A stretch of DNA of 64,000 nucleotides from assembly GCA_965649825.1 (NCBI GenBank), contig OZ287698.1:511949-575948 (forward strand), given 5' to 3'. The notes under the pieces are model-generated. The model searched no databases. It saw only the letters and a list, made by a program, of their open reading frames with translations, and was not told where the DNA came from. Shown in pieces: positions 33,561 to 63,499 of the stretch; position 1 is the stretch's first letter; every line of letters starts with the position of its first letter. The translations under genes were made by a program, and so were the position numbers. This DNA comes from Penicillus capitatus (taxonomy: Eukaryota; Plantae; Chlorophyta).

Positions 33561-36500
33561 ATGGGAAGTAACGACGAATCCCGACAACCACTACTGGAGG
33601 ACGACGGCGATGCGGATGAACACTCCCCGGTTCGCATAACATCTGCTAACTCCACGACAACGACGGCACGCAGACGTAAGTTAAAACAATAAGACTGCCG
33701 GAATTGAAGGTTTTCGGTGCCGTTCTTGCTCTGACGTCCAGTTCGTCCATCCGCCTTTCTAATTCTCTGCTAAACGAATCGTACGAATATCTTGTTTTGC
33801 GACGGCACGAGATTTCCTTCGATGACCTCTTCTGTGCTGCGACGTGGCAGACGGAGTCTCTAGCATTCGTTATGTCTTTATAGGCGCTCCACGCTTTTCT
33901 CTTATCGATTTCAAGCCTCTCAATGGAATTCCCTTTCGATCTCTTGAACCATCGAAAAACGGCATACTCTTCACCTGTCGTGCATTTTCGGCAGACGGGA
34001 CGTGTTTAGCCACAGGAGATATGGGTGGCTGTATCAGGTACCCGTCCCTGCTGTAGTCACTCACAATTGTGTTTAATGACCAGACTGTATGTAGGCTGTG
34101 GAGAACTACAGACTATAAGCTTGTCGCCGAAAAGAGTAAGGCGTTCGACCACGCCATCGATTGCTTACGCTTCATACAAAATGAAAACGATAGACTCATT
34201 GCCGTCGACACAAGAGGATACTACCGATGCCTGAACCTGCCGTGGTCTGATGATGAGAACCAGCTGGACGCCACATCCGTAGCAGAACTTAGCTGCAGTA
34301 GCTTCTCGTTGGTAGATGGTGAAAGATTTCTTAACGACATACCCAAACCGCTTCCTTACAGCGACACTTGCAAACATCAGTTCTCAAGAAATGGACGGAT
34401 CCTGCTGCGCATCAAATCTACAGGTACATACTTTGAACCCGAATACGAAATACGTACCATTGAAGTCATTAAGCTGGGAGGCAGTATACCGCAAGTCATC
34501 CATCTCGATGAAGATCGGAAGTATCAAAAAGGCTTCCCCTTGCTTTCTAAGAATGGTGAGGGTGTCCTGGTGTGCTCCATGCTGAATACAGAGGTACCCA
34601 AAATAGCCGCTGGTATGTGTGTAGACATTTTGCTTAGGTATGGCCAAAGTTGGATTTCGAAGCTGGGTCAGGTCATCAACACTCGATGACTCTGGATGGC
34701 ACTCGTGCCGTCTGGGGATTGCAGGGTCAATATTTGCTTTTGTGGAAGACGACTGATAATATAGAATCATCGACGAAACAATCGACGATCTTCGTGTACA
34801 AAACGGAAGATCTGCGTCGTCATCACAGTAGCGGTCAATTGAAGCCGTTTTGGGATAGGAAGTTTCCAGCGGGGCAATCTCGCTACGAAGCGCAAATGTT
34901 GAAACCCCTCTCAGCGTCAGACAAAAGCGTCGAAGTACTCATTGCAGAAATGGATGTGCACGGAAACCGAAGAGTGTTGATCTGGGATATCTTGACAGAC
35001 ACCGCCAGAAACCAGATAATGATTCCGGCGGAAAAAGAGACAAGAGTGTTTAAAACGCATCCAGCGTTTGGAGGAAGACAGGACGATGAAAGTGTAAATG
35101 ATCCGCAATCAGAACAAGATGATGAGTTCCACAAGCTCTGCATCATCGAGTCAGTTCATCCAAAATTCTGCATCTCCAAGAACAGACAGTGGATTGGTAC
35201 AATCTCTCGAAGGTTTCAGTCGTGTTCCATTGTCTCCGTCAAATCTGGAGCCACAGTGTGGAGTTCTGGCTTTGCACAACGCTTACAAGTGGGTCCGATC
35301 GACATGCCTATTAAAGCGATATTTGACCCAAGTGGGGATTATTTTTTGGTCATGGGCGAATGCGCTATCATGGTATGCGCTCCAGAGTTTCTCCACGAAA
35401 AGCCGCATGCCGAGGAATGTGATCAGACATTCCTCAGAGCATATACTTGTCTGCCTAGTCAGTCTCTCGCAAGTGCCTTGGAGGTCAGAGAATACAACAG
35501 TGGGGTTTCGAGCTGGATTGATGACGTCACCCGCACCATTAGCCATAACAATTATATATCCGATGCCACTCAGTCTGCTGACGGAAAGAGACTAGCCTTC
35601 ATTGTTTCCAACAGAGAGACGTCTTCCCAGCCAATCGGATCGGCAAAAATCGTCTGCTTTGAAAAAGGGGAAGGCAGAGCGTTTCCGGATCTAGCATTCA
35701 AAGACGCTGGAACAGAGGCAGCTTCAGAATCATTCATCCCTAATCGATTGTTCTTCTACGACAACGACAACGGACCAAATCAAGGGCTTGTTGCTTTTTC
35801 TGTGATTGACAAGCCGACAGCGACGTTCATCGACATTCGAACAAGGAAAATGCGAGAAAATGATCTGGAGAACATCGACAGATGCCTTCGGATATCTCAG
35901 ACAGCAGATCGGAAGAAGGTGACGATCCTCGACATCAGGAAAGTGATCATCCTTGACTTAAGAAGCGAGACAACGTCCGAGATGGAATACAAGGTTAACT
36001 TTAGGAACATCCTGGAAATGGTGACCGCCAAATCGAAGCGGAAGCGCAGGACAAGACTCGATCGCAGAGAAGAAAACACTCAGAGGCGAGTCTCTGATGA
36101 TGGTTGCTGCGTCCTGCTCTCGTGGGACGAAGGAAGGAAAGAGAGTATCGTCGTGCATCCATCCAGTGGACAGCAAGAAGTGGAAGACCTTCTGAAGCAA
36201 CCAAACAGACAACTGTCGGACCATTGCACACTGTCAAGCGACGGCAAAGCAACCTGCTTCATTGACATGTGCGAGATTCCCAGCGACAGGATAACGGTTG
36301 GAATCTTCAACGAATCTGGTAACGCTATCATGTGAAGTCCGATTTACAGTTGTGTCTGTAGATCGGAAAGCCTTTCATCGCATTCACCTTCCATTCGGTT
36401 CTCTTAAACCGCTAGATGGCAGTTTCTTCGACGCGTCTGATAGGACGGGCAGCATAGGAGACTCTTTAGACAACATCAGAAAGTCGATCTCTCGTACTTC

Positions 36501-39460
36501 CTTCTCTTCTTTCTTCCCTCGTGACACCGCCATCCAGGTGCTCTGGGATGTCGAAGGACGATGGCTTTCTACCGTAAACCGACGAATAAAAGCCAAGACC
36601 CCGAAGCCTTGGCCGATGAGCTTTCGGATGTGTTTTGTGGAGCATCTGATGACAGTTCAGAGATTTTCTTGGACGGCGGGCACTTGCACCACCGCTTCCC
36701 CTACGAACAAGGCATGCGTCGAATCCGTCGCTTTACATTTAGCGACACAGAAGGTAGTACGATGGGATACAGGAGGCTTGATGCCAGAGATCGCGACGAC
36801 ATCAACGACTGCTTTCAGAAGTAGGTGCATTCATGTATCTACAGCCGCCCAAATAGAATGCCATTCTGCAGATTAGCGAAGAGAAACGGTCCTTCCTTTG
36901 TCAACACGCCCTACGGATCCGGACAGTCGTTCTTCCGTGAAGCATTTAGGAATGGAGACAAAGAAGTAGTAAAGTGCTGTGTCGACCATGCCGTAAAGAC
37001 TGGTGTTCTGCTGGATGTGGGAGACGTTCCTTGCTTCGACGATGTGAAAGAGGAAGCAATTGAGCCTGCCTGTCGCAATATCGTTGTAAGAAGCACTCAC
37101 ACACTTTCTGTTTCGAAATGGACAAACTGTTTCATTCGCCAGGAAAAGCTCAAAGACCTTTGGCATCACTGGTGGAGCATCACAGACACGGAGAATGATC
37201 GACCTTGCAGAGAAGGGTCATCTGATATCCTGAGCGTGGCCTTGGATGAGAAATCAAAGGAGCGCGTCAAAGAGGCTGTCGAGTTGATATGTTCTCCGAT
37301 CACACCGTTTAGAAGCGCAGCATGGCTGATGAAGAGATATTACAAGCAGTTGTGGAAGGAATACCCAGAGGTTATCATGCACGTTCTTTACCATGACTCC
37401 GTCTTCTCCGAAACCTGTCAACCCAGAGTCTACGACAAGTGTTTGAACTTGGCATCATGGAAAGACAAAGCGTTGCATCAGGGCACATCGGACACGGTTT
37501 CAAACTGGGAGTTTATCGACTTGCCTGATCGTCTGGACAAACGAAACGGATTAAAAGATCAGAAAATTGTCGAAGTCGGAGAAAACGAAGAGGACGTGGC
37601 AACCGTGCTGGCCTCGCTCAAATTCCTTCGCATCGAGGATGCAACGCGGATTGGAATGAATGGAATCATTCGTCCATTGCTCATGCGTAATGCCCCAGTA
37701 GACATTTTCCGCAGCAAAGCAGTCAAAGCCGTTACCCAGTACAAATGGTTAACGTACTGGAGAAAAGGTTTTCGTTGGTACGTCGCCCCTTATGCACTGT
37801 TTATGGCTGTGTTCACTACATATGCCATTTTCGTTGCCAGATCCTCTGCCGTTTGCAAAGGAAAGTATTCAGACATTATTGTGAAACATTGCTGTCTCAT
37901 TCTTATGATTCTCTTCGGTCTGAAAATGTTGTACGAAGAAGTTTCTCAACTTTGTACATATATGGAAGACGGACGAGCACATCTTGGTAGCCGAATGAGA
38001 GGAGTGGCTTACTTCTTCAGATCGAAGTGGAATTGGCTGGATCTTGCCTCTTGCACGTTTCTGCTATTGTTCATTCCAACCCTTCACCTATCGGCTTGCC
38101 TTACATCAGGTTCGATGCCCATGTCATCAGACAACACTCGGAAAAACGATGGGACTTTGTTAGGCGAAGCGGAAGACTCTGGTGATGTATTGGATAAAGC
38201 ACTTTCAGCGACTCTGGCCGTGGAAGCCATAATAGCATCCATCAAGGTCGTCCTATGTGAATCAGATTCTTAATTGATGTCAATCATTCGTCGTAGGGTT
38301 GGTACTTTGCACAACCATTCCGTATCTTTGGTGCCCTGGTGCTGATGGTCTTGAACGTTATCGTCGACTGCTTCGCCTTTTTGGTGTTGTCTTCTGCAGT
38401 TGTCTTCGGATTCGGACTGGCACTGCACATCCTCCATCGACATGCAACTGAAGAGGCTGAACCTGATCACAACGACGATGATGAAAAACAAGGAGATTTC
38501 ACTGGCGATTATGGATCCTTACACAAAAGCCTACTGACCCTCTTCTACGCTCTTTTTGGGTCATTTGATGCCGATGTGAGTCTCCTAGGGCAATCGTCAT
38601 TGGTAAGCATTTTGTGTGCAGTTCCCAGGTATGGACGGTGGCATGACTGCACTTTTTACTCTCTTCTTCGCCTTTTACATGATCGGTGCAGTCATACTGC
38701 TGTTGAATCTTCTCATCGCTATCATGGGAGACACTTTCGACAAGATAAAGAGTTCCGAGGAGTCCCAGAAGTTGATGGCGAGGGCTAAATTCATAGACGC
38801 TTACGAGGCATCGCTGCGAAGCGACAGCAAGAAGGATTTTGAGTGAGATGTTGCAGAACTCCAGAACATGTGACGCACATCTTCTTCATTGGCTGTAGGA
38901 AAGAAACAGGAAAGTACTTGCACATCTTGGAGTATGCAGACGGTAGTGCCGTTCGTAAGATGTTTTCTTCGTGGACAGGAAAGCTCCGCATGCTGGAAGA
39001 ACGATTCGAGTACGTCGCCTGAAGGGGACGTTCTTTACATAAGAAACATCTATGTTTATGATTAACCAACATTGTACCCTTTAGGTCCTGTATCATGAAA
39101 GTCGGAGATAATCTGAAGGCTGACTTGGAAAAGCATGATGAGAATCTGAAGAGGAAATTAAAAAAGCAAGATGAGAAGCTGAAGGAAGAAATTAGAAACG
39201 AAAACGAGAAATTGAGAGCGGAATTGAAAGAACAGAATGAGAAACTGTATCGTCTGATGCAAAGAATGGCTGAGAAGGTTGAAACAGAAAGCACGACGAC
39301 GAAGGGGCAAACGCCGACAGCAGAGGGTGGCGACAAGCCGGACGATGCCAATATCTCAGCAATGGAAACAGATGGTGGTAAACAAGAAGATACAGCAGGT
39401 CGGAAGGAAGATAGCCCGGGATCAGGAAGTGCGAGTGGTGAAGGATCGTCAAACCCATAA
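33561..39460 (+). CDS. WD40-like beta-propeller + TRP-like cation channel, paralog A (~1700 aa)
   Basis: Exons splice in frame from MGSNDESRQPLLED. WD40 blade FTCRAFSADGTCLATGD..IRLWRT and many S.DG/N.G blade motifs. TM domain YFFRSKWNWLDL, S4-S5 GWYFAQPFRIFGALVLMVLNVIVD, pore LFYALFGSFD, S6 LLLNLLIAIMGDTFDKI, TRP-like helix MARAKFIDAYE, and a coiled coil. Confidence 0.85.
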
Positions 39461-40884
39461 CACAACCGGAATGAAACAGGAGTGGGTGGGCGTGCAAGGA
39501 AGATAGGAGGCCCCGACTGGGCTGCAGAAGAAGGATTAACGATTGAGTGGCTTTTACATCTCCCTTTGAACATAGTATATCGGGAGAGCAGAAGAAGGAT
39601 TGACAAGGTTCAGTGATACTGGGATTGCGAACACTTAAGGGAGATCATGGAGGGGGAGCACAAGAAAGAGTAAACAAACTTTCTGACAGTTTCAAGAAGC
39701 ATTCGGCGCGGCGAGGATCAAGTGGATCAATGATTCTGAACAATAAGGTCCTTCCCAACCAGAATGCTTGAACAGTTTGACGCGGAATTCTGTTGATTTT
39801 TTCTCCTTTGCCCGTAAGGTGTCATGCTTGATGCAGACGACCTAATTAGAAACAAACGACCGGAATGTGAGGGGGCGAGGCATCGATTTTGCATACCGAT
39901 TTTTTCAGCGGGTTGATTGTTAAGAGAGGAGACTTTCTTTCTTTGTACCATGCATCTCTGAAGAACAGGGATCAAACACTTTGGTGTGAAACCTGAAGAC
40001 GTGACGATTACGGACTACCGCTAAAGAACACATATTGTCTTGCAGATGAGGAAGAAAGACAATGAGCAAGACTCACTGGGTTAGCGGTGTAATTAATAGA
40101 AAACGATCAATATTTCAATCAGTGTTCCTCTATTTCCTTGCAGTTTTGATAAGCCAAACCTAGCAATCATGAAACAAGCATCTCGATTAAGCAGGAACCG
40201 CGTTATGTTAGACTCTGCCTGAAGGATGTTATTTGAATGGTCGATTCTGATCGAGGCCCCGATCGCGTGCGGCGCAGATGAAAGATTGATCACAGCTCTC
40301 CGACCTCGAAGAGATCGGAGTGCACGTGGAAGCACTGATTGCTCGTTCTCACTCAGCCTGGTGCGAATCTCGAACACTATCCGATGCGTGGAATCGGCAA
40401 CAGAATCTGGAACGTGTTGAGCACATCATGAGATGGTCTTCTGTCGATCTCTTCGCCGCGTGCGTGTTCCACAAGCGAGAGGTCAGCAGCTCTTAGACCA
40501 GCTCCCGATGGAGATCTTGCGGCCATGGCTCTCCTCTGACGCCTCCAACATGCAACCAAAGCACTTCGAGATTCGAGCTTGACGGTGTATAAATTCACAT
40601 TCATTTCAGAATGTGTTCAATTTGCCTTGAATCGTCTGACAGACGCGCGGAGACTCGCTCAGGCGTCTTGACCGCGTCACAGTTGCGATTTGCTTTTCAA
40701 GTGTCGCGGCGACGCGAATGGCGTAGGATCTGCGTCATCGAGATTCCTACACGCCGCTCACGGTCTCTGTTCTCTTCAGACGGCTGTCCTACTTTTGTCC
40801 TCCATGCTGATTGTGTGATGTGACGTAACCGCTTGACAACCTTCACCTCGGAAACGGGCGCATAGAGTTCGATGACGCTATTGC
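39281..40884 (+). repeat. Inverted-repeat arm 1 (partner 45384-46925)
   Basis: Identical six-frame ORFs mirror each other (39727-39975 vs 46295-46543; 40093-40377 vs 45893-46177; 40611-40823 vs 45445-45657). Confidence 0.95.
39640..40610 (-). pseudogene. Decayed unknown gene antisense to and downstream of channel A
   Basis: Mirror of 45660-46620(+). The diverged copy behind channel C keeps the same frames (QAExNITxxLLNRD; HLILAxPNAxxKLxESxFT). Confidence 0.4.
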
Positions 40885-40999
40885 TGAGGCTGTGATTATG
40901 CAAACGAGATACCTCGATCCCGGGCCTCACATTCGGAAACGCTGTCAACGCCGCGCTGAAAGAAAGAACTCAATGTCGACAAAGGGGTAAGATCTTGTA

Positions 41000-43560: not shown

Positions 43561-43588
43561 TAAACTCTCATCTTATCACGCAGGTGCG

Positions 43589-45060: not shown

Positions 45061-45383
45061 GACATCATATGACTATTTCTTCCTCTGAGTGTCACTTAGA
45101 GGTGGCAGATACAGTTACAAAGCACTATGGGCAGAGAATGAGTGTAGTGGTCTTTTGCATATCTGTATTCTAATGTGACAGCAAAGCTGCCGGTCGTCTT
45201 CTATTATTCACTCAAGTGGACCGTTAGATAGGTGGAGGCAGCTTCAAGGATCTGAAAATGACTCGTTTGACGCCGTATCATCTTCACTCTGCTTCGCGTT
45301 GTCAAATCGAACCAGAACATAAGGACGGAACACGGTACATTCTCTCCCTCAATTGTCGAAGTGAACTCATTGGTACAACCACG

Positions 45384-46925
45384 GCAATAGCGTCATCGAA
45401 CTCTATGCGCCCGTTTCCGAGGTGAAGGTTGTCAAGCGGTTACGTCACATCACACAATCAGCATGGAGGACAAAAGTAGGACAGCCGTCTGAAGAGAACA
45501 GAGACCGTGAGCGGCGTGTAGGAATCTCGATGACGCAGATCCTACGCCATTCGCGTCGCCGCGACACTTGAAAAGCAAATCGCAACTGTGACGCGGTCAA
45601 GACGCCTGAGCGAGTCTCCGCGCGTCTGTCAGACGATTCAAGGCAAATTGAACACATTCTGAAATGAATGTGAATTTATACACCGTCAAGCTTGAATCGT
45701 AGAGTGCTTTGGTTGCATGTTGGAGGCGTCAGAGGAGAGCCATGGACGCTAGAGCTCCATCGGGAGCTGGTCTAAGAGCTGCTGACCTCTCGCTGGTGGA
45801 ACACGCCGCGTGATTTGGAAGATCGACAGAAGACCATCTCATGATGTGCTCAACACGTTCCAGATTCTGTTGCCGATTCCACGCATCGGATAGTGTTCGA
45901 GATTCGCACCAGGCTGAGTGAGAACGAGCAATCAGTGCTTCCATGTGCACTCCGATCTCTTCGAGGTCGGAGAGCTGTGATCAATCTTTCATCTGCGCCG
46001 CACGCGATCGGGGCCTCGATCAGAATCGACCATTCAAATAACATCCTTCAGGCAGAGTCTAACATAACGCGGTTCCTGCTTAATCGAGATGCTTGTTTCA
46101 TGATTGCTAGGTTTGGCTTATCAAAACTGCAAGGAAATAGAGGAACACTGATTGAAATATTGATCGTTTTCTATTAATTACACCGCTAACCCAGTGAGTC
46201 TTGCTCATTGTCTTTCTTCCTCATCTGCAAGACAATATGTGTTCTTTAGCGGTAGTCCGTAATCGTCACGTCTTCAGGTTTCACACCAAAGTGTTTGATC
46301 CCTGTTCTTCAGAGATGCATGGTACAAAGAAAGAAAGTCTCCTCTCTTAACAATCAACCCGCTGAAAAAATCGGTATGCAAAATCGATGCCTCGCCCCCT
46401 CACATTCCGGTCGTTTGTTTCTAATTAGGTCGTCTGCATCAAGCATGACACCTTACGGGCAAAGGAGAAAAAATCAACAGAATTCCGCGTCAAACTGTTC
46501 AAGCATTCTGGTTGGGAAGGACCTTATTGTTCAGAATCATTGATCCACTTGATCCTCGCCGCGCCGAATGCTTCTTGAAACTGTCAGAAAGTTTGTTTAC
46601 TCTTTCTTGTGCTCCCCCTCCATGATCTCCCTTAAGTGTTTACAATCCCAGTATCACTGAACCTTGTCAATCCTTCTTCTGCAGCCCAGTCGGTTCCTCT
46701 TATCTTCCTTGCACGCCCACCCACCCCTGTTTCATTCCGGTCGTGTTATGGGTTTGACGATCCTTCACCGCTCGCACTTCCTGATCCCGGGCCATCTTCC
46801 TTCCGACCTGCTGTATCTTCTTGTTTACCACCATCTGTTTCCATTGCTGAGATATTGGCATCGTCCGGCTTGTCGCCACCCTCTGCTGTCGGCGTTTGTC
46901 CCTTCGTCGTCTTGCTTTCCGTTTC
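45384..46925 (-). repeat. Inverted-repeat arm 2 (partner 39281-40884)
   Basis: Reverse complement of arm 1, lacking the 64-bp segment present at 39538-39601. Confidence 0.95.
45660..46620 (+). pseudogene. Decayed unknown gene antisense to and downstream of channel B
   Basis: SLRGRRAVINLSSAPHAIGASIRIDHSNNILQAESNITRFLLNRD aligns gap-free with SL*GRRHVTKLSNAQRVIDD*ILFKDSISRYQAELNITLVLLNRD at ~56750-56910. Confidence 0.4.
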
Positions 46926-49900
46926 GATCTTCTGAAACATTTTTTGCACCAGATGATACAGGTTATCATTCTGCTTCTTCAAATCCGCTTTCAGCTTCTC
47001 GTTTTCCTTTTTTATTTCCTTCTTTAGATGCTCGTTTTCCTTCTTCATTTCCTTTCTCAGATTGTCATCGTGCTTTCTCAATTCAATCTTCAAATTCTCA
47101 TCTTGTTTTCTCGTTTCCTCTTTCAGAATCTCTTCAGTTTCCTTGATACATGACCTACAGAGTACAACGTTAGTTGATCATAAAGAGGCATGCTGTTTTA
47201 AGTAAAGAAAACAGCTTCTACTTCATGAAACGTACTTGAACCGATCATCCAACATGCGCACCTTTCCCGTCCACGAAGGTATATCGTGAACGGCGCCACC
47301 GTCTGCGTACTCCAGAACGCACAAGTACTCACCTGTGTCTTTCCTGTAGCCAGTGGCAGAGATGTATATCAAATGTCCTTGCGTTCTACAATGTCTTACT
47401 CAATCTCCTTTCGCTTCCTGCCTTCAAGCGATGCTTCACAGGCGTCAATGAAACTCGCCCTCGCCATCAACATCTGAGACTCTTCCGAACTCTTTGTTTT
47501 GTCAAAAGTGTCTCCCATGATGGCGATGAGAAGATTCAACAGCAGGATGACAGCAACGATCATGTACAAGCCGAAGAATAGAGTGAAGAGGGGAGTGAAG
47601 AAACGATTCACGTCAGGAAACTGCAAATGAAAACGCTGATCAATGCCGACTGTCAAGAGGGGACTACCTCGGCTTCAAAATCCCCAAAAAGGGCATAGAA
47701 GAGGGTCAGCAAGCTATTGGGTAAAGAATCGTAGTCTCTAAGGACATCTTCATGTCTTTCACTGTCGTCATTGATGCCCGGCACATCATCTGCAGGTGCA
47801 TGTCGATGGAGGATGTGCAGTGCCAGTCCGAATCCGAAGACAACTGCAAACGACAACACCAAGAAGGCGAAGCAGTCGACGATAACATTCCTGACCATCA
47901 ACACCAGAGCACCAAAACTTTGAAATGGTTGCGCGAAATACCAGGCCTGTGATGAACAGAAGATATCATTGAAAATCCGACATGGCTGGAATGACCTTCG
48001 TGGACATCAGTACGGCTTCCAATGCCAGTGTCGCTGAAAGTGCTTGATCCAATACAGAACTGAGGCTTTCCTGGCTTCCGTTGGATGGCACTGTCTTTGA
48101 ATCTGATACACGGCAGGCTGATATGTGCAAGGCTGGTATAAACAACAGCAAAAGCACGCATGAGGCAAGGTCTACCCAGTTCCAAATGGACTTGAAGAAG
48201 TAAGCCACTCCACTTATTTTGCTACCAAGATATTTATGCCCATCTTTTACGAATGTTTTGAGTTGGCATAGTTCTTCGTACAACATATGCATTCCAAAGA
48301 GAACAATAAAAGCGAGAGAACAATGCTTAGCGCTATCTATGAAGGGATCATCTTCGCAAACTACTGAGGATCTGGCAACTAGAGTGGAATATGTAGTAAA
48401 CAAAATGAGATATATCGCATAAAAACCGGCATACCGACGAAAACGCTGTTTCCAGAACGCTGACCATTTGTACTGAACGACGTTTTTGACGGCTTCACTG
48501 CAAAAGAGATTCACCGGAGCATTCTGCAGCAATAGTGGCCGAATAATTCCATTCATTCCAATTCGAGCAGCATCTTCGATGCGCAGGATTTTCAAAGATG
48601 CCTGTACAGTTGCTTTGTCGTCTTCGCATTCTCTTTCCTTGGCGATCTGCTGATTCCTTTCTTTCCATGTTTTCTCTATAACCTTTGGAGAGTCAATAAA
48701 CGCCCAATCCAGAACTGTATTGGTTGTGCCCAAAAGTGAGTCTTTACTTCCATTGGACGCCAATTTCAGAAAATCGTCGTGGATTCTGGGTTGGCAAGTT
48801 TCGGAAAACATAGGCTCCTGGGTTAGAATGGTCATCATTACCTCGGGATACTCCTTCCACAGCTGCTGGTAATACACTTTCATGATCCGCGATGCACTTC
48901 TAAACGGTGTCGTTGGAGAACATATCAACTCCACCGCCTCTTTCACTCGCTCCTTCGATTTCTCATCCAAGGCTTCTTTCAGTATATTGGATGACTCTTT
49001 TCTTCGCGGTCGATTACTCTTCGTCGGTGTGATGCTCAAACAGCGTCGCAGAAAGTCTTTGAGCTTTCTCTGAAAAGTGAAACAGTTAGTCCATTTCGAA
49101 ACAGAAAGCATGAGAGATGTTCTCACGATGATATTGCGATCGGCAGGCTTGATCGCTTCCTCTTTCACATCGTCGAAGCAAGGAACGTCTCCCACATCCA
49201 GCAGAACACCACTCTTCTCGGCATGAGCGATGCAACACTTCACTACATCTCTATCTCCGTTCCCGAAGGCTTCACGGAAGAACGACTGTCCGGATCCGTA
49301 AGGCGTGTTGACAAAGGAAGGACCGTTTCTCACCGCTAATCTGCAGTACACTGTCCTACTTAAGCGGCTGCATATCGATGAATGTGCTCACCTCTGAAAG
49401 CACTTGTGGATGTCTTCACGATCTTTGGCGTCAAGCTTCTCGTACCTTGCCGTACTGTCTGCTGTGTCCCGAAACTCGAAGCATCGAATGCGTTGTTTTC
49501 CCAATGTAGGAAAGAAGCTGAGGTCCAGCTGCCCTCTGTCAAAGAAAATCTCGGAACCGTCGTCAGATATTCCACAGAACACAGTCGACATTTTCTCTGC
49601 GGGACTTCTACCATCTTGACGTTTTGACCTTGTTTCAGCCAGTAGATCGATATTTCTTCCTTCTCCTAGAAATTTCGAGGTTCCGCGTAGCAGTGTTGAG
49701 AGGATCTGAAGAAGAGATTTATTACTTGAGTTTTGCGCCGGTTGAACGTCCAAGGTTCCTTCCTTGTTTCTTACTCTGCTGGTCGAACACATGAAATTGT
49801 ATTCTACCGAGTAGGCATCATCAAGCAACATGTCCATTTTGTCCGTTAGACTGAATGGAATATAAATGCGATGGAAGACTCTTTTATCTGTACAGAATGC

Positions 49901-52676
49901 CGTTGCTCGAGAGTACAGAGATCAGGAAAAGGTTACCCGATTCGTTGAAGATTCCAATCGTTATTCGGCTGTTGGGAATTTCGTGCATGTCAATGAAGCA
50001 GGTTGCTCTGCCGTCGCTTGACAGAGTGCAGTAGTCCGAAAGCATTTTGTATGGTTGCTTTAGAAGATCTTCCACTTCTTTCTGGCGACTGGAGGGATGC
50101 ACGACAATACTCTCTTGCATTCCTTGATCCCATGAGAGCAGGACGCAGAGACCATCATCAGAGACGCGCTTCTGAGTACCTTCTAGTCCGCGGTTGAGTC
50201 TTCTCGCGAATTCCCACTTCGTAGTGGCGGTCACTAATCCCAACAAGTTTGTGAAATCCACCTTGTATTCTATCTCGGACGTTGTCTCGCTTCTTAAGTC
50301 AAGGATGATCACTTTCCTGATGTCGAGGATCGTCACCTTATTCCGATCTGCTGTCTGAGATATCCGAAGGCATCTGTCTATATTCTCCAGATTGTTTTCT
50401 CGCATTTTCCTTGTTCGAATGTCGATGAACACTGCCGTCGGCTTGTCAATCAGAGAAAAGGCAACCAGTCCTTGATCTGGTCCGTTGCCGTTGTCGTAGA
50501 GGAACAGTCGATTAGGGATGAATGATTCTGAAGCTGCCTCTGTTCCAGCGTCTTTGAATGCCAGATCTAGATAATCTCCGGCTGCCCCTTCTTCAAGGCA
50601 AACGATTCTTGAGGATCTGATTGGCTGGGAAGGCGTCTCTCTGTCGGGAACAATAAAGGCAAGCCGCTTTCCGTCAGCAGACTGAGTGGCATCGGATATG
50701 TCACTGTTATTGTTAATAATTCTGGTGACTTTAGTAATCCATTCAGGAAACTCGTTGTCGTGTTCTCGGTCTTCCAGGGCACTTGCGAGTGACTGACTAG
50801 GAAGACAAGCATATGCCTTGAGGAATGTCTGATCACATTCCTCGGCACACGGCCTATCACTGAGAAACTCTGGAGTGCAAACGACGATGCCGCGGTTGCC
50901 CATAATCATGAAGTGATCTCCATTTGGATCAAACATCGCCTCAGTCGGCATCTCATGCGAAGCCGACTGCAAGCATTTTGGAGAATTAGAACTCCAGACT
51001 GTTGCCCCAGATCTGACAGCGGCAATGGAGCACGACTGAAACTTCTGCGAGAATGTACCGAGCCACTGTTTGTTCTTGGAGATACAAAACTTTGGATGCG
51101 CAGCTTCCATGATGCGATGCCGGTGCTTGCAAGATTCAATATCTAGATCTAACTGCGAAACCTCCGCGATTTCATCGACTGGTCTGTTATGTGTCTTCGA
51201 AGCTGCCTCGTTCGGTGTTGACTGTCTTTTCGCTGAAATCAACAACTCGTTGTTCTCGGAGTCGTTCACGACATCCCATATCAACATTCTCCGGTTTCCT
51301 TTCACGTCCATTTCTGCAATGAGCACTTCGATGCTTTCGCCCGTCTCGGAAAGAGGCTCTAACATTCGTGCTTCATAACGAGATTCTCCAGCGGGAAACT
51401 TCTTTTCCCAACGCGGCTTTGCTTGACGGCTTCTATGATGATGACGACTCAGATCTTCTGTTTTGTACACGGAAAGCGTCGGTTCTTCGGAATCTGTGCG
51501 CCACAGAAGCAAATACTGACCCTGTAATCCCCAGACGGCACAGGTGCCTTTCAAGGTTATCGAGTCCTTCTTCTGCGTCTTAGCGTCGAAATCCAACCTT
51601 GGCCACACCTAAGCGGAACGTCTACACACATGCCTGCGGCTACTTTGCATACCTCTGTCTTCGACACGGAGCACACGAGGACACTCTCACCATTCTCGGC
51701 AAGAAGGGGGAGCCCCTTTTGATGATGCTCATCATCTTTATCGAGCCGAATGATGATAGTGGTACTGTCTCCCTGCTTGAAGACCTCCATGGCGTTGATT
51801 TCGTAATCTCGTTCAGAATAAGTACTCGTGGAATGGGTGAGCAGCAAGATCTGTCCGTTCTTTGAAAACTGATGCTTGCGAACTGTACTCATCGGAAGCT
51901 CCGTCTCAATGGTGCTTTGAAATTTGTCCTTCATTTCAGTTGATAAAAGCAAGCGCATGCATTCCGTCGCGGACGCGTCCTCTCTGCTTGACTGGCTCTC
52001 ATCACTAGACCACGACAGCTTCATACGTCTGTAGTGTCCTTTAGTGTCGATTGCAATAAGTCTATCATTCTCATTGTGTTCGAAGCTTAAGCAATCGACG
52101 GGGTGTTCGAATGCCTTGCTTCTTTCATCGATAAGCTTAAAGTCTGCAGTTCTCCATAGCCTAATGTTGTGACATTTAACAGAATCGTGATTAAGGATGA
52201 GAGACGCACCTTATACCACCACTATCGTCTCCTGTCGCGAAGCACGTCCCGTCTGCCGAAAACGCGTGACAGGTGAAGAGTATATCGTCATTCGATGGTT
52301 CCAGCACTCGATAGGGGATTCCGTTCAGAGGCTTATAGTCGACGAGCGAAAAACGTGGCAGGCCTAGAAAAGAAAACACAGTGACTTTTAGACAGTCTCG
52401 CGTGACAGCACAGAAGTTGCCGAAGAAATGGTCCCGCCGCTACGGAGCCATTTGTACGAAACGTTTAGCAGAGAATTGGCAAAGAGGATGGACGAGCTGG
52501 ACGTCGAAGCAAGAACGGAACGGAGAACCTTCAACTTAAGACGTCAGACTGATTAACTTACGTTTGAGTGAAGTCGCTGTCGTGGACTCGTTTCGGATTT
52601 TGCGAGTCCGTGAGGATGCCTCCACATGCCTGCAGTCCTCCAGCAGAGGTTGACGTAGTTCGTGTTCGCTTCCCAT
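46746..52676 (-). CDS. WD40-like beta-propeller + TRP-like cation channel, paralog B
   Basis: Same exon structure as A, from MGSEHELRQPLLED; pore LFYALFGDFEAE; LLLNLLIAIMGDTFDK; ends GEGSSNP*. No disabling lesion found after splicing. Confidence 0.85.
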
Positions 52677-52819: not shown

Positions 52820-53990
52820 ACTAATAAGCACACGTGGCGACCACGTACTCGACGGACAGGCAGATTCCTCAGAGGAAGACGTCAGCTTCTATGCTGAAGA
52901 TCTCGACCGCTCTCTGCCCTTCAAAGAGACAAGCAGCAAAGTCAGGTTCTTTGACAAGCATTCGGCGATAGTCGTCGGACGACCCGTGAATCGTAACTCC
53001 GCAGAACGATGCCAACGCTATCCTTAACTGTGGCTGTCTGCGTTATGCGATGCACTGTCGCTTCTTCTATTCTCCGTATGCGCCTCTTGCTTGCTCAAAA
53101 GGCCTAGCACACCGAATACCCATTAATATGGGATTAGTCCTCGTTCCATCTCGTAGCAGAAACGTATTTCAAACGTTCTACTCTGTATCAGACGATCAGT
53201 TCAGCAACACTTGGTTTCATGTGCGACATGGATTCCTCATATAGCGCCAAACGACATCCGAGTTTTCAACAAGAACTGCTTTGAAGTACGCTGCACAGTG
53301 CGAAACAGAGGATCAGGATCTGGACTACGTGTTTTCTGACGCTTTTTTATCTGCAATGTCTGCGCAAAGTTACTGCTGTGTCTAGTGTGGAGATGCTCTT
53401 GTCAAGAAAAGATAAGAAATGCAGTATATAAAATTTTACAGTCAGGAAGAATGTCACAGTGCTGTGTGGATGTCGTCCATCGATGATGAACGTTGAGTCC
53501 AAGGAGACAAGGATTGTTTAATACATAATTACACAATTCGCCCACTCGTGCAGTTTACCGTCTCTCTCTCTCTGAACAGAGCAGAAACACAGAGATCCTG
53601 AGCTAACCATTGGCATCTTAGACGGATTCAGAGATGAAGAGACTCGACGCCACAGAGCGCAGAAGAACCCTGTGTTCATCTCTCCCTTATGTCTTCAACG
53701 CAAACGAGATGAGGTCGAAGCGATAGAGATCGATGTCGATATCACAGCCTCGACCGCCTCAGTAAAGGGGATCATCGTACACCTTCTGAGTCGTACTATC
53801 CAGCAATCGGCGAGATGCGTTACGAAGGAGCTTCATTAAGAAATGTCATTCGAAGCTTTGGAGATGCAACGTCCTTTGTTCTTTGTCCGGAAGATCCAGG
53901 CATTGTTCATAATGCCAGTGACTTTAAATAGCGACCACTGTCAGAATGTCGAACTCAAGTCCAAAGCGGCGGCGGCACGATGACACAATG
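52820..53990 (-). pseudogene. Decayed upstream gene of unit B (homolog of 32220-33421)
   Basis: Reverse-complement similarity to 32220-33421; QPQLRIALASFCGVTIHGSSDDYRRMLVKEPDFAAC. Confidence 0.35.
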
Positions 53991-56699: not shown

Positions 56700-57470
56700 G
56701 TGCGGAAGGTAATCGTAGAAATCGCGAGCTCGACGCTTTGGGAGACATGACGGCCTGCATGACACAGGGCTTCTCTTTAAGGTCGGAGACATGTTACTAA
56801 GCTCTCTAATGCGCAACGCGTGATCGATGACTAGATCTTATTCAAAGATTCAATTAGCCGATATCAGGCAGAGTTAAACATAACGTTGGTTCTGCTTAAT
56901 CGAGATGTTGTCTCCTTGAGGAAATTGTTGTCACCGGCCAGAAAAGTGCATGGAAACAGAGAAGCTCAAATCAAATGCATTCATTCCCAATAGCTGCACA
57001 ACTAGAGTCATTGAACTTGTTTGTGTAATCTTCTCTTCTAATTTGCCAGAGCAATCTGTCCTCTACCATATTACTCAAGAATTATCATGTCTTCAGATTC
57101 CACAACAAAGTGTTTCCCATTCTTCAGAAATGCATCGCAGAAAAAGATATCATCCTTGTCTCTTAAAAATCAACCCGTTGCACAAATCGGTGACCGAAAA
57201 GGGTCCCCACACTTAGGGTTTTTTTTTGTTTTTCTGGTCAGTCGTCTGCATTCCGCCCGATGCCTTACAGAGAGAAAAAGAAAAAGATAAGAATCGACGT
57301 CGAACGGTTCGAGCATGTTGACGAGAAGGATCTTATGTTCAGAATCGCTGATCACTTGATCCTCGCTCGACCGAATGCTGCTTGGAAGTTGCTAGAGAGC
57401 TTCTTTACTGTTTCTAGAATCGACCGAATGCTGCTTGGAAGTTGCTAGAGAGCTTCTTTACTGTTTCTTG
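56700..57470 (+). pseudogene. Decayed unknown gene antisense to and downstream of channel C
   Basis: KKKIRIDVERFEHVDEKDLMFRIADHLILARPNAAWKLLESFFT, homologous to the 46430-46610 region; contains stops. Confidence 0.4.
57367..57468. repeat. 53-bp-period tandem duplication
   Basis: TCGACCGAATGCTGCTTGGAAGTTGCTAGAGAGCTTCTTTACTGTTTCT at 57367 and 57420. Confidence 0.95.
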
Positions 57471-57603
57471 AAGCTCCGCCTCGATGGTCTCGCCCTTTAC
57501 TGTTTGCAACACCAGTTTCACCAGATCTTGTAATCTGTCGGCCGCATCCCGATCGGTCCCTCTGATTTCCCTTGCATACCATCCGCCTTTCTTGCGGTTT
57601 GTG

Positions 57604-60600
57604 TTATGGGTTCGACGGCCCTTCGTCGCTCGCATTTCCCGATCCCGAGCTATCCTCTTTCAGACATGCTGTATATTCTTGTTTGCCACCATCTCTCTCC
57701 ATTGCTGAGATATCGGCATCGTCCCGCTTGTCGCCACCTTCAACTGTCGGCGTTTGTCCCTTCGTCGTCTTGCTTTCTGTTTCAATCTTCTCAGCCATTC
57801 TTTGCATCAGACGATACAGTTTCTCATTTTGCTTCCTCGTGTCGTCTTTCAGCTTCTCGTTTTCCTTTTTCAAATTCTTCTCAGATTTCTTGATGCACGA
57901 CCTAAAGCGTACAACGTTGATTAATCATAAACACACATGTTTCGGATGAAAAGAACATCTCCTTCAGGCGACTGACTCACTCGAATCGTTCTTCCAGCAT
58001 GCGGAGCTTTCCCGTCCACGAAGAAGATACCTTGCGAGCCTCACCGTCTGCGTGCTCCAGTATGTACAGGTACTTGCCTGTTTCTTTCCTAAGTCCAGAC
58101 CAAAGAGTTAAGGTGAAGTGTCTTATCGCACTGCGACATCTCACTCAATCTTTTTTCGCTCTTTTTTAGTCAGCGTTGCCTCCCAAGCGTCAATGAAGCT
58201 CGCCCTCGCTATCAGCATCTGAGACTCCTCGGAACTTTTTGTCCTGTCAAAAGTATCTCCCATGATAGCGATGAGAAGATTCAGCAGCAGTATGACAGCA
58301 ATAACCATGTACAAGCCGAAGAAAAGAGTGAAGAGTAGAGTGAAGAAACGGTTCACGTAGGGAAACTGCAAATGAAAACACTGATCGATGCCGACTGTCA
58401 AGAGAGGATTACCTCGGCTTCAAATGCCCCGAAAAGAGCATAGAAGAGGGTAAGTAGGCTTTTGGGTAAAGATCCATAATCGCCAGTAAAATCTCCGCTT
58501 TTTTCACTTCTTCCATTGAAATCTCCGCCTTTTTCACCTTTGCCATTGAAAAATCCGCCTTCTTCACTGTCGTCATCAATGCCCATCACTTCCTCTGCAG
58601 GTGCATGTCGATGGAGGATGTGCAGTGCCAGTCCGAATCCAAAGATAACTGCAGAAGACAACACCAAGAAGGCGAAGCAGTCGACGATGACATTCCTGAC
58701 CATCAACACCAGAGCACCGAAGTTCTGGAATGGCTGTGCAAAATACCAAACCTGCGATGAACAGAGGATATCATTAAAAAACTGACACGGCTGGGATCAC
58801 CTTAGTAGACACTAGTACGGCTTCTAATGCCAGTGTCGCTGAGAGTGCTTGATTCAATGCAGAACTGAGACCTTCCTGGCTTCCGTCGAATGGTGCTGTC
58901 CCTGGATCTGACGTAAGACAAGCTGATATGTGCAGGGCTGGTATAATCGACAGCAGAAAAATGCAAGATAAAAGATCCAGCCAATTCCATTTTGATCTGA
59001 AAAAGTAAGCCGCTCCTCTCATTCGACTGCCAAAATGTACTCGTCCATCTTCAACAAACGTACAGATTTGATAAAGTTCTTCGTACATCATATATATGCC
59101 GAAGAGAACTAAAACAGCGAGACAGCAATGTCTCATGTTATCATCCGAAAGGTCTCCTTCGCAAACGGCTGAGGATTCCGCGACATAAATAGAGTAAGTA
59201 GTAAACACAGCCATGAATAGTATATAAGGGCCGACATACCAATAAAAACCTTCACCCCAGTATATTAACCATTTATACTGAGTGACAGCTTTGACGGCTT
59301 TGCTGCGGAAAATGTCTGTCGGGGCATTCCGCATTAGCAATGGGCGAATGATCCCATTCATTCCAATCCGAGCTGCATCCTCGATACGAAGGAATTTGAG
59401 AGATGCCTGAACTGTTGCCATGTCCTCTCCGTTTTCTCCTCCTTGAATAAAGAATTTCATAGATCGCAGCGTGGTTACTTTGGTCTCTTCGTGCTCTTCC
59501 CTGTCGACCATCGTCTGATCTTCTAACCCATTTCTTTTATCCAGACGATCGGGAGAGTCAATAAACTGCCAGTTTGAAACCGCGTCCGATGTGCCCTGAT
59601 TCCGGGTTTTGTCTTTCCAAGATGCTAAGCTCAAAAAGTTGTCGTAGACTCTGGGTTGGCATGTTTCGAAGAACATGGACTTCTGGAAAAGAGCGTTCAT
59701 TATAATCTCTGGGTATTCCTTCCACAACTGCTTGTAGTACGTTTTCATAAGCCATGCTGCGCTTCTAAACGGTGTGATCGGAGAGCATATCAGCTCGACA
59801 GCCTCCTTAACTCTCTCCATTGATTTCTCATCCAAGGCTTCTTTCAGAATATTGGATGACACTTCTCTCGATTGATCCTTCTTCGGGCGTCTGACACTCC
59901 ACCAGCGATCCCAAAAGCCTTTGAGATTTTCCTGGCGAATAGAATTTAGTGTATCTCAAAAAAGAAGGTGTACGAATGCTTCTTACAACGATATCATTGA
60001 AATCGGGAAGCTCGACTGCTTCCTCTTTCTCATCATCGAAGCGAGGAACGTTTCCCACATCCAGCAGAACACCAGTCTTTTCGGCATGAGCAATGCAGCA
60101 CTTCACTACTTCTCCGTCCTTGTTCTTGAAGGCTTCGCGAAAGAACGACTGTCCAGATCCGTAAGGCGTGTTGACAAAAGAAGGACCGTTTTTCGTCGCT
60201 AACCTGCAATACACAATCCCGTTTGGGCAGCTGTGGGTCAATGATTGTGTTCACCTCTGAAAGAAGCTGCCAATGTCTTTGCGATTTTTGCCATCAAGCT
60301 TCTTGTATCTCGTCGCACTGTCTTCTGTGTCCCGAAATCTTAAGCACAGGAATCGACGTCTCTCTTGTTCGGAGGAGAAGCGGAAGTGTCCGCCGTCCAA
60401 GAAGATCTCTGAACCGTTATCGGATATTCCACAAAACACAGTCGACATGTCCTCAACTAAGGTTTCGGGTTCTTGGCTTCTGTTGGCTTCTCTGTGATAG
60501 ACAGCGACCGTCTTCTGATGTTCCAGAGGATCTGAAAAGTGGTGTCGTAGGGGAAAAGAAGAGAAGGAAGTACAAGAGATCGAATTCCTTGTGTTGTCGA

Positions 60601-63499
60601 AAACACTCTCTGTGCTGTCAATCCTTTCAGGCATGTCGAAGAAACTGCCCTCCGATAAAGGAGAGGAACCGAATGGAATGTGAACACGATGGAAGACTTG
60701 TCGATCTGTGGACACAGCTACAGAACAAGAGTACAGAGATCAGGATAAGGTTACCTGATTCGTTGAAGATTCCAACAGTTATTCTGTAGTTGCGAATCGC
60801 GCACATATCGATAAAGCAAGTTGCTCTGCCGTCGCTGGACAGAGTGCAGTAATCCGACAGCACTCTGTTTGGTTGCTTCAAAAGGTCTTCCACTTCTTGC
60901 TGTCCACTGGAGGGATGCACGACAATACTCTCTTGCATTCCTTGATCCCATGAGAGCAGGACGCAGCGACCATCATCAGAGACTCGCTTCTGGGTGTCTT
61001 CAACGATGCCGTCCCTTCTCTTGCGTTTCCATTTCGTCTTGGCGGTCACTAATCCCAACAGGTTTGTAAAGTCAACCTTGTACTTTATTGTTTCAAACGT
61101 TGTCTCGCTTCTTAAGTCAAGGATGACCACTTTCCCGATATCGAGGATAGTCACCCTTTTCCGATCTGCTGTCTGAGATATCCGAAGGCATTTGTCGATG
61201 TTCTTTAGCTTCTTTTCTCGCTTCTTCCTCGTCATAAGGTCGATGAACATTGCCGTCGGCTTGTCAATCAGAGAAAAAGCAACCAGTCCTTGATCTGGTC
61301 CGTTGCCGTTGTCGTAGAGGAACAGTCGATTAGGGATGAATGATTCTGAAGCTGCCTGAGTTCCAGCGTCTTCGAATGCCAGATCCGGAAACGCTCTGCC
61401 TTCCCCTTTTTCAAAGCAGACGATTTTTGCGGATCCGATTGGCTGGGAAGACGTCTCTCTGTTGGAATCAATGAAGGCTAGTCTCTTTCCGTGAGCAGAC
61501 TGAGTGGCATCGGATATATAACTGTTGCGGCTAATGCTGCTGGTGACATCAGTTATCCAAGCAGGAAAGTCACTGTCGTGTTCTCTTTCCTCCAAGGCAC
61601 TTGCGAGTGACTGACTAGGAAGACAAGCGCATGCTTTTAGGAAGGTCTTGTCGCATTCCTCAGTATTTAGCTTGTCATCGAGAAACTCTGGAGCAAACAC
61701 GATAATGGCGCATTCGCCCATGATCAGAAAGTGGTCTCCATTCGGATCATACATCGCCTCAGTCGGTATGTCTTGTTGCTCAGTCGAATGCAAAGGATAC
61801 AGAACGCCTGAACTCCACACTGTGGCTCCAGACTCGACGGAGACAATGGAACATGACTGAAACCTCTGCGAGAATGCACCAATCCACCGTCTGTTCTTGG
61901 AGATGCAAAATTTGGGGTAAACAGCTTCAATGATACGGAGTATATAAGACGCATCGTCTGGATCTGATTTCGGATCATTCGCACCTTTATCGCCATGTCT
62001 TCCTCGAAACGTTGTATGCGTTTTAATCAGTCTTGGCCCCCTTTCCGTTGGAATCAGTATCTGGTTTCTGACAACGTCTTTCGTAATATCCCAGATTAAC
62101 ACTCTTCTTCGGTTTCCATTAACATCCGTTTCTGCTATGAGTACTTCGATGCTTTCATCTGACTCGGAGAGGCGTTCTAACACTTGCGCTTCATAGCGGA
62201 ACTTTCCAGGAGGAAAGGTTTTGCTTCTTAACGGTATCAGTTGGTCGCTTTTCTGACAAAGACACAGGTCTTCTGTTCTGTACACGAAGATCGTCGATTG
62301 TTTCGTCGACTCTTTGTTTTCTGTTGTTTTCCACAAAAGCAGATACTCGCCCTGCAATCCCCAGACGGCACAAGTGCCATCCAGAGTGATCGAGTGTTGC
62401 TGTCCTGACCCGGCATCGAAATCCAATCTTGGCCACACCTAAACACAGTGTTTATATGCGAATTGGTGGCTGCTTTACGTACCGTTGTCTCCGACACGGA
62501 GCACACGAGGACACTTTCACCATTCTTGGAAAGCAGTGGGAACCCCTTTCGATACTTTCTGTCGTCATCGAGCTCGATATTGGACGCTATACTCTCTCTC
62601 AGGTTCAGCTTAAAGACATCGATGGTATGGATCTCGTATTTTGGATCATGGTACGTATTTTCGAACTGGACGCGCAGCACGATCCGTCCATTACTTGAGA
62701 ACTGGTACTTGCATATGTCACTGAGATTCTTTGGCGGAAAAAACTGATGAAATCTGCCACGACGTACCGATGCGAGGCTACAGCATACACCTTCTGTTGC
62801 GGATGCGGCATTCAGCTTCCTCTCATCATCGAACCACGTCAGGTTCATGCTTTTGTAGTTCCCTTCAGTGTCGATAGCAATAAGTCTATCATTCTTTTTC
62901 TGTTCGAAGCTTAAGCAATCGACGGCGTTTTCGAACGCGTCACTCCTTCCGGCGACAAGCGTGTAGTCTGCAGTTCTCCACAGCCTAATGTCGTGTCATT
63001 GAACACAATCGTGATAAGGATGAGAGACGCACCTTATGCAACCACTATCGTCTCCTGTCGCTAAGCACGTTCCGTCTGCCGAGAATGCACGACAGGTGAA
63101 AACTGTGCCGCCATTCGATGGTTCCAGCACTCGATGGGGAATTCCGTTCAGAGGCCTGTAGTCGACGAGCGAAAAACGTGGCAGGCCTAGAAAAGAAAAC
63201 ACAGTGACTGTTAGACTGTCTCACGTAACAGTACAGGAGTCGCCGAAAAAATCGTCCCGCCGCTACGGAGCCATTTGTACGAAACGTTTAGCAGAGAATT
63301 GGCAAAGAGGATGGACGAGCTGGACGTCGAAGCAAGAACGGAACGGAGAACCTTCAACTTAAGACGTCAGACTGATTAACTTACGTTTGAGTGAAGTCGC
63401 TGTCGTGGACTCGTTTCGGATTTTGCGAGTCCGTGAGGATTCCTCCGCATGCCTGCAGTCCTCCAGCAGAGGTTGACGTGGTTCGTGTTCGCTTCCCAT
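57604..63499 (-). CDS. WD40-like beta-propeller + TRP-like cation channel, paralog C
   Basis: Same exon structure, from MGSEHEPRQPLLED; pore LFYALFGAFEAE; LLLNLLIAIMGDTFDR; ends DEGPSNP*. The apparent frameshift at ~59950 is resolved by a 55-nt GTAAGA...CAG intron. Confidence 0.85.
58481..58570 (-). repeat. 30-bp coding tandem repeat x3 in the pore turret of paralog C
   Basis: A/AATCTCCGC-type blocks at 58491, 58521 and 58551; protein GGFFNGKGEK GGDFNGRSEK SGDFTGDYGS. Confidence 0.85.

Follow-up and report, generated by a model that had tools for sequence, protein, structure and literature searches.

Three locally duplicated Penicillus capitatus genes predicted to encode double-propeller channels of the TRPW type

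A 64,000-nucleotide (nt) stretch of Penicillus capitatus (Chlorophyta; contig OZ287698.1, positions 511,949 to 575,948; hereafter the window), eukaryotic DNA with a G+C content of about 48%, carries three large related genes, A, B and C, which likely encode TRPW cation channels that arose by local duplication, each a single polypeptide composed of two propellers, linkers, a six-transmembrane (6-TM) domain, a TRP helix and a coiled coil. TRPW was defined on 15 June 2026 as a set of channels related to TRP whose hallmark is N-terminal WD40 repeats; ankyrin repeats often precede the channel, and a TRP helix and a coiled coil at the C-terminus complete the protein (Coyle et al., bioRxiv 10.64898/2026.06.15.732144). 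The same clade was independently given this name, with 'one or more' propeller domains, in a preprint of the same date (10.64898/2026.06.15.732245). The combination of PF00520 and PF00400 was reported from 184 of 993 EukProt proteomes, among them many stramenopiles, haptophytes, chlorophytes, ciliates, cercozoans and others, and the cryogenic electron microscopy structure of TRPW1 from Salpingoeca rosetta, at 2.37 A, displays one seven-bladed propeller per subunit (10.64898/2026.06.15.732144). A preliminary description of the window, made from the sequence alone, had stated that TRP channels carry ankyrin repeats or MHR domains rather than large WD40 arrays; with TRPW defined, this statement is out of date. 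The architecture, structure, ligand and wide distribution of TRPW are thus already known, and what is new here is three further members, with no new question attached.

Gene models and N-terminal propellers

Exactly three copies of the S6-type motif LLNLLIAIMGDTFD are present in the window, on the plus strand at 38700 and on the minus strand at 47542 and 58287, and the stop-to-stop reading frames around these sites form three collinear chains. Gene models were built by hand, requiring GT...AG introns at positions common to the three copies, and gave the following structures.

33561-39460, plus strand: gene A, 12 exons, 1722 amino acids (aa), stop-free spliced coding sequence, Pfam Ion_trans 1.2e-14, weak WD40
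Gene A exons 1-6, plus strand: 33561-33675, 33884-34037, 34095-34593, 34638-36318, 36362-36493, 36538-36820
Gene A exons 7-12, plus strand: 36872-37085, 37143-38246, 38297-38575, 38622-38842, 38899-39009, 39085-39460
46746-52676, minus strand: gene B, 11 exons, 1749 aa, stop-free spliced coding sequence, Pfam Ion_trans 2e-18
Gene B exons 1-6, minus strand: 52676-52562, 52363-52210, 52160-51653, 51608-49937, 49887-49392, 49340-49127
Gene B exons 7-11, minus strand: 49069-47996, 47946-47668, 47620-47400, 47343-47236, 47154-46746
57604-63499, minus strand: gene C, 12 exons, 1725 aa, stop-free spliced coding sequence, Pfam Ion_trans 4.4e-16
Gene C exons 1-6, minus strand: 63499-63385, 63186-63033, 62984-62483, 62438-60755, 60705-60574, 60531-60255
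Gene C exons 7-12, minus strand: 60203-59987, 59931-58801, 58751-58413, 58365-58145, 58088-57981, 57901-57604

Three intact paralogs of about 5.9 kb with these same ends had been proposed in the preliminary description, and the three uninterrupted frames are consistent with this. Each gene contains 10-11 introns, all GT...AG, of which intron 1 measures about 200 nt and the rest 42-81 nt; the donors are of the GTAAGT, GTGAGT and GTACGT types, and an ACTAAC-like branch site is present in some introns. Frameshifts, as in pseudogenes, were suspected in A near 36500 and in C near 59950 and were rejected, since conserved short introns lie there that are in-frame and stop-free in other copies. The first of these measures 44 nt in A (36494-36537) and 42 nt in C (60573-60532), and the second 57 nt in A (37086-37142), 57 nt in B (49126-49070) and 55 nt in C (59986-59932). 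Both keep their GT/AG ends in the three-way DNA alignment, one with an ACTAAC branch site, and the 2-nt indels fall inside them. Given these conserved ends and the confinement of the 2-nt length differences, the two stretches are best taken as introns, so that all three frames would be complete. Left unspliced, the two introns (42-57 nt) mimic frameshifts, and a prokaryote-style gene caller or a naive reading of open reading frames (ORFs) would insert 14-19 spurious residues.

It could be argued that propeller and channel are separately transcribed neighbours, fused only by our splicing model, given that the segment between them (aa 829-981) is poorly conserved and predicted to be disordered and that the fusion depends on inferred splicing. 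However, the frame is open across every junction in the three copies, with conserved canonical splice sites, and two related loci (L003 and L004, 21-30% identity) keep the same collinear one-strand order with gaps that are only intron-sized. As the architecture has also been reported from transcriptome-derived proteomes of many protists (10.64898/2026.06.15.732144), such an artefact is considered extremely improbable.

According to the predicted fold, the N-terminal half of A, B and C is composed of two WD40-type beta-propellers, which are followed by linkers.

49853-52352, minus strand: gene B, two tandem beta-propellers, propeller 1 (aa 43-383) and propeller 2 (aa 433-828), as predicted by AlphaFold2 and Foldseek
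33895-36396, plus strand: gene A, equivalent propeller region
63175-60671, minus strand: gene C, equivalent propeller region
48443-49852, minus strand: gene B, variable linker (aa 829-981), then helical linker and pre-S1 (aa 982-1262), from pLDDT and profile search
36397-37769, plus strand: gene A, equivalent linker region
60670-59248, minus strand: gene C, equivalent linker region

AlphaFold2 modelling of the N-terminal part of gene B with a 6-sequence alignment gave a predicted local distance difference test score (pLDDT) of 29. A 36-sequence alignment, to which relatives of 21-29% identity from a HMMER search had been added, gave a mean pLDDT of 72.9, with residues 43-828 mostly at 80-95. 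In the latter model, residues 43-828 are nearly all beta, with about 26 strands in 43-383, about 27 in 433-827 and a few helical inserts. Foldseek comparison with the PDB returned double seven-bladed WD40 proteins as top matches over about 800 aligned columns (E 1e-13 to 6e-18), including PWP2/UTP1, UTP12/13, Apaf-1, AIP1 ('two seven-bladed beta-propeller domains') and IFT-A subunits; the template modelling scores were low (about 0.2), as is expected when the inter-propeller angle differs. By sequence, a recognisable WD40 repeat is present in the first blade only (residues 55-100; Pfam WD40 PF00400, E 4e-4 to 3e-3), with sub-threshold scores of 18-21 bits against the 27-bit cut-off in the window proteins, and the best PDB sequence match of this blade is the WD region of Apaf-1 (E 1.4e-7). 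A profile of the N-terminal family matched just this first blade among PDB sequences, so that it is the predicted fold on which the propeller assignment is based. In the N-terminal family alignment, an 'S-x-D/N-G-x-x-hydrophobic' motif recurs about 14 times, and the blades are highly diverged from one another, as evidenced by weak off-diagonal matches in profile self-comparison (hhalign E 0.005 or worse). The N-terminal region thus models as propellers with high confidence, as had been anticipated; of the '~1000 aa of WD40/propeller-like blades' proposed earlier, the propellers stand, but the structured part spans about 790 aa (43-828) and a single blade is WD40-like by sequence.

Word-indexed homologue searches recovered only ORF fragments from a few ENA/Logan metagenome contigs and one aphid TRP, and no annotated relative. 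Exhaustive HMMER searching of 1.84 billion representatives yielded about 35 specific relatives when clustered at 50%, aligning to query positions 90-825 with 21-29% identity, while the remaining matches were generic WD40 proteins aligning to the first blade alone. Pfam gave no match in nine of the nine unambiguous N-terminal relatives scanned, and a tenth, P0044 (the N-terminal ORF of L004), gave only weak first-blade WD40 matches.

Within the linker of gene B, aa 829-981 have pLDDT values below 50 and form the least conserved segment between the copies (35-48% identity), and aa 982-1262 are conserved and helical-looking, with a pre-S1 motif that aligns to the TRPV1 pre-S1. The 'degenerate ankyrin-like linker' of the preliminary description is reduced to one weak ankyrin-like repeat: the linker profile matched one designed ankyrin protein only, through a single repeat-like stretch (E 0.017), and Pfam Ank gave no match in the linker at E up to 10.

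Channel domain and placement among TRP channels

According to sequence-level analyses, the C-terminal part of each protein contains a 6-TM channel domain with a TRP helix, and a coiled coil.

47408-48442, minus strand: gene B, S1-S6 channel domain (aa 1263-1545) and TRP-helix region (aa 1546-1575), from hydropathy, Pfam and HMMER
37770-38834, plus strand: gene A, equivalent channel region
59247-58153, minus strand: gene C, equivalent channel region
46896-47240, minus strand: gene B, C-terminal coiled coil with hendecad repeats (aa 1613-1700), from hydrophobic periodicity
39005-39310, plus strand: gene A, equivalent coiled-coil region
57985-57754, minus strand: gene C, equivalent coiled-coil region with fewer repeats

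Hydropathy analysis gave six segments, all at residues 1240-1540; the first 1200 residues have none, which places the N-terminal part in the cytoplasm. All three Pfam Ion_trans (PF00520) matches exceed the gathering score, and a phmmer search of all PDB sequences returned TRPV1 as best match (8.8e-12, gene B), followed by TRPV2, 3, 4 and 5, Nanchung and NOMPC. The TRPV1 alignment begins at S4-S5 and continues across the pore helix, filter and S6 into the TRP helix, with which HMMER aligns gene B up to residue 1568, and the pre-S1 helix gives a second, weak match. In the filter region, LFGDFEAE of the window proteins stands against TIGMGDLE of TRPV1, aligning to its GMGD filter. The Arg-Ala pair of the TRP helix after S6 is kept in an ungapped comparison with TRPV3 and S. 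rosetta EGD77421. A PKD_channel match was partial and confined to S5-S6, and the large extracellular S1-S2 domain of TRPP/polycystin (group-2 TRP) channels is absent from the window proteins, in which S1 and S2 lie about 12 residues apart. The 6-TM domain, TRP-type S6, TRP helix and coiled coil that had been described are thus all present in A, B and C, and the Ion_trans and TRPV/Nanchung/NOMPC matches place the transmembrane part with TRP channels at the sequence level.

The predicted coiled coil is a K/E-rich amphipathic segment of 50-90 residues, preceded by a spacer of about 60 residues. A hydrophobic periodicity of 3.67 far exceeds that of 3.5 in A and B (amplitude about 13 versus 2-5), and does so marginally in the shorter segment of C (8.6 versus 6.8); a 33-nt DNA tandem repeat at 39129-39210 in A corresponds to the 11-residue coiled-coil unit. 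These hendecads suggest a non-canonical helical bundle, possibly right-handed or straight. Long antisense ORFs lie opposite the coiled-coil and tail exons of A (38791-39606, minus strand, 271 aa) and B (46664-47146, plus strand, 160 aa), which most likely are no genes but arise from the K/E-rich coding repeats. Gene C differs by a 30-nt unit repeated 2.9 times at 58482-58568, encoding a Gly/Lys/Asp/Phe-rich 10-residue repeat in the loop between S5 and the pore helix that is absent in A and B. A 53-nt unit is repeated twice with 98% identity at 57367-57472, just past the stop codon of C.

The affiliation of the channel domains was assessed against the reference channel domains in Data S1, S5 and S6 of 10.64898/2026.06.15.732144. 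In phmmer searches the window proteins, and likewise relatives at L002, L003 and L004, scored best against the TRPW-labelled Chlamydomonas P013314, Gonium P006068 and S. rosetta EGD81237 (50-53 bits, of which 50-51 for the window channel domains), compared to 32-43 bits for the best TRPC and TRPV references against the window channel domains, human TRPV3 and choanoflagellate TRPV lying below TRPW. EGD81237 is without WD40 repeats and is not among the 17 listed TRPW genes, yet it groups in the TRPW clade (10.64898/2026.06.15.732144). The S4-S5 motif reads QPFQSFGALVLMV in the window proteins, QPFQSTGPLVRMI in TRPW and RGFQQMGIYAVMI in TRPV1. In a rough neighbour-joining tree (216 columns, Kimura distances, 200 bootstraps), the window family was monophyletic in 142 of the 200 bootstraps and nested among core S. 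rosetta, ciliate, diatom and chlorophyte TRPW, with a TRPW-only sister group in 144 of 200. Taken together, these comparisons assign the channel domains of A, B and C to TRPW with moderate-to-good confidence.

The high ranking of TRPV1-5 among solved structures (E down to 9e-12), along with the TRPV-like pre-S1 and S6 motifs, would also fit an origin of these channels as offshoots of TRPV, or of another animal-type group-1 lineage, with propellers acquired independently of TRPW. However, TRPW1 was not in the PDB sets used, of which the fold library ends at 2026-04-08, and TRPW outscores human TRPV3 and choanoflagellate TRPV once included. The tree places the family among TRPW, without TRPV as sister, and the six-repeat ankyrin domain, a TRPV feature, was found in the window proteins neither by Pfam nor by the linker profile. 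An independent acquisition of propellers is accordingly judged decidedly improbable.

Several observations weigh against the assignment of A, B and C as single-chain TRPW channels. A clade of all TRPW was recovered in 0 of 200 bootstraps, as TRPA and TRPV intrude among outlying TRPW members, and the placement in the tree gives moderate support only, the monophyly of all TRPW not being reproduced. The aromatic position of the TRP box (Trp or Phe; Trp in the TRP box) is Met in the window proteins, and the S4-S5 linker carries Leu where the TRPW motif GPL(V/I)R has its arginine. If that arginine corresponds to R950 of TRPW1, A, B and C probably respond to a ligand other than its fatty-acid-type one. 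The predicted structures are confined to the N-terminal part, and we infer the splicing and single-transcript status of the three genes from the open frame.

The lost arginine leads to a tentative alternative, in which the three genes belong to a separate, deep double-propeller branch of TRPW. Within this reading, the loss would indicate that specificity has moved off the TRPW1-type lipid pocket to the propellers or their partners, and the palindromic and tandem cluster would exchange propeller and channel modules among its copies by gene conversion. We regard this as unlikely compared to the assignment of A, B and C to TRPW as locally duplicated channels.

Duplication, selection and proposed mode of action

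Genes A and B are arranged tail-to-tail, and B and C form a direct duplication about 10.8 kb apart. Three-way DNA alignment gave 74-78% identity overall in a strongly mosaic pattern: B and C reach 95-96% at the 5' end, the closest pair over much of the middle is A and C, and A and B reach 93-100% at the 3' end. An inverted repeat lies in the 3' flanks of A and B.

39588-40893 and 45375-46682: left and partner arm of the inverted repeat, 100% identical over 863 nt and 97% identical over a further 432 nt

The arms are separated by a spacer of about 4.5 kb, and the coding regions of A and B are only about 74% identical. This repeat points to recent gene conversion or palindrome maintenance, with an assembly artefact as an alternative. 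A related locus, L001 (ERZ26696514, 2451-21434), encodes in order ThiF, UNC-50, a channel gene on the plus strand and, about 6.5 kb on, a second channel gene on the minus strand, at about 50-60% protein identity. The same arrangement indicates that the tail-to-tail pair predates the split of these organisms, and gene conversion would explain how such an old pair has recent, perfect flank identity. Conversion among the copies is thus likely. A 169-nt stretch upstream of A (33155-33323) recurs upstream of C (63739-63907) in inverted orientation with 89% identity, and may be a shared promoter or a shared element of the 5' untranslated region.

The ratio of nonsynonymous to synonymous substitution rates (Nei-Gojobori dN/dS, omega) lies at 0.36-0.39 over whole genes; in 100-codon windows it ranges from 0.18 to 0.81, none exceeding 1, and dS along the genes varies from 0.16 to 1.4. 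Identity between the copies is lowest in predicted disordered segments (28-49%) and highest in propeller 2 and the pore (72-84%), and propeller 1 is less conserved than propeller 2 (58-65% versus 72-76%). All three copies are kept by purifying selection, and their pattern is one of duplication with partial homogenisation rather than of hypervariable repeats of the HET-E type. The 'birth-and-death diversification' proposed earlier is therefore seen only by half: the local duplication is clear, but the omega values, with no window above 1, indicate purifying selection, and the mosaic identity is typical of gene conversion.

These values also bear on whether one or more copies might be decaying pseudogenes or non-conducting relics. 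An omega of about 0.37 is fairly relaxed, and two frameshift-like sites emerge if the short in-frame introns are left unspliced; under consistent splicing, however, three of the three frames are intact, the pore and S6 motifs are conserved in every copy, and omega stays well below 1 in every domain, the pore included. Decay of a copy appears very improbable.

For the locally duplicated TRPW channels that we favour, the mode of action may be sketched by analogy with TRPW1 and other group-1 TRP channels. Four subunits would assemble around a central cation pore, which, given the alignment of LFGDFEAE to the GMGD filter of TRPV1, would probably be non-selective and Ca2+-permeable, and the hendecad coiled coil may bundle the four C-termini. 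TRPW1 is activated by bacterial lipids and a synthetic agonist that bind a vanilloid-like pocket of its transmembrane domain, and its propeller was proposed by the authors to be a protein-interaction scaffold (10.64898/2026.06.15.732144). By the same analogy, the stimulus would be sensed mainly in or near the transmembrane domain, in a pocket of S1-S4, the S4-S5 linker and the TRP helix, and the two cytoplasmic propellers may serve to dock partner proteins or to localise the channel. The copies themselves would derive from local duplication, partly homogenised by gene conversion.

A different role of the propellers had been put forward in the preliminary description, namely that they form a variable ligand sensor in the manner of Apaf-1, HET-E or HNWD, which gates the pore in immunity, allorecognition or chemosensing. 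In such a model the sensor surfaces would evolve under diversifying selection. Certain features are in line with this proposal: the first blade resembles the WD40 of Apaf-1, the family comprises multiple fast-evolving copies (some 35 specific relatives after clustering at 50%), conservation is somewhat lower in propeller 1 than in propeller 2, and a divergent member at L004 adjoins an NWD1-type STAND/WD40 gene. Against it, the agonists of the sole characterised member, TRPW1, bind the transmembrane domain, and sensing by the propeller is left unsupported. Pfam scans of the full window proteins detected no NACHT/NB-ARC or other NTPase family, and the blades are mutually diverged, unlike the near-identical hypervariable repeats of HET-E/HNWD. 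No 100-codon window has a dN/dS above 1, and variability is highest in the linkers predicted to be disordered, not in the propellers. We therefore consider a propeller-based ligand sensor unlikely. Of the 'single-chain sensor-plus-pore receptor', the single chain agrees with the single frame and the receptor with TRPW1, itself a sensory receptor (10.64898/2026.06.15.732144), but not the sensing by the propeller.

Genomic surroundings and comparison with known systems

Window positions 1-33000 contain ordinary, compactly spaced eukaryotic genes, the less conserved of which have ENA metagenome relatives only. The protein sequence of the histone H3 also occurs unchanged in EukProt, and its 90% cluster unites stramenopiles (Phytophthora, Ectocarpus, a diatom, Paraphysomonas) with a grass and a nematode.

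8193-8711: GST-like gene
10109-11260: cytochrome P450
about 15900-17150: eIF2-gamma-like exons
18440-19750: protein kinase
21150-21551: histone H3
23411-25126: plant-type leucine-rich repeat protein, likely with a transmembrane tail
26630-27325, minus strand: purH/ATIC
29134-29622: ThiF/NAE1-like gene
31226-31975, minus strand: UNC-50

At L004, which belongs to the same assembly as L002, the very divergent family member (1799-5118, minus strand, 21% propeller identity) lies head-to-head with the NWD1-type STAND gene (8001-12600, plus strand), which matches nSTAND1, WHD_NWD1 and a WD40 array; this adjacency may be coincidence.

TRPW was proposed in June 2026 as an ancient receptor family, which helps to explain the origin of the sensory TRP channels of animals. 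Genes A, B and C contribute a clear two-propeller layout and, as mosaic paralogs, a natural 'domain-swap series', which together could offer comparison material on the role of the propeller. They also illustrate that reading raw sequence alone can reveal a real, recently recognised protein architecture. The preliminary description had named an already characterised, conserved single-copy family as the outcome that would speak against its proposal; the family is indeed characterised, but it is multi-copy and fast-evolving.

Compared to known systems, the window proteins are closest to TRPW, with which they have in common a single chain of N-terminal WD40-type propeller(s), a group-1 TRP transmembrane domain, a TRP helix and a coiled coil, a multi-copy, fast-diverging character, and S4-S5 and S6 motifs. 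Unlike TRPW1 with its one seven-bladed propeller, they are predicted to have two (about 14 blades), although variable numbers are reported in the preprints; they further differ from TRPW in blades so diverged that one alone scores as WD40, in the hendecad coiled coil, in the Met of the TRP box and in the Leu of the S4-S5 linker. TRPV1-6, Nanchung and NOMPC are similar in the 6-TM fold, the pore helix, the S6 motif LLLN(M/L)LIA(L/I)MG(E/D)T, the pre-S1 motif and the position of the TRP helix, but they carry an N-terminal ankyrin repeat domain in place of the double propeller and score below TRPW. Tandem double-propeller WD40 proteins (PWP2/UTP1, UTP12/13, AIP1 and the Apaf-1 WD region) resemble the predicted fold of residues 43-828, at 8-11% identity and with no functional link, whereas the window propellers are fused to an ion channel. 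HET-E/HNWD and other NWD STAND receptors are likewise multi-copy and rapidly evolving and possess WD40 arrays; HET-E/HNWD combine these with NACHT/NB-ARC and near-identical hypervariable repeats, whereas the window genes carry a channel effector in the same chain.

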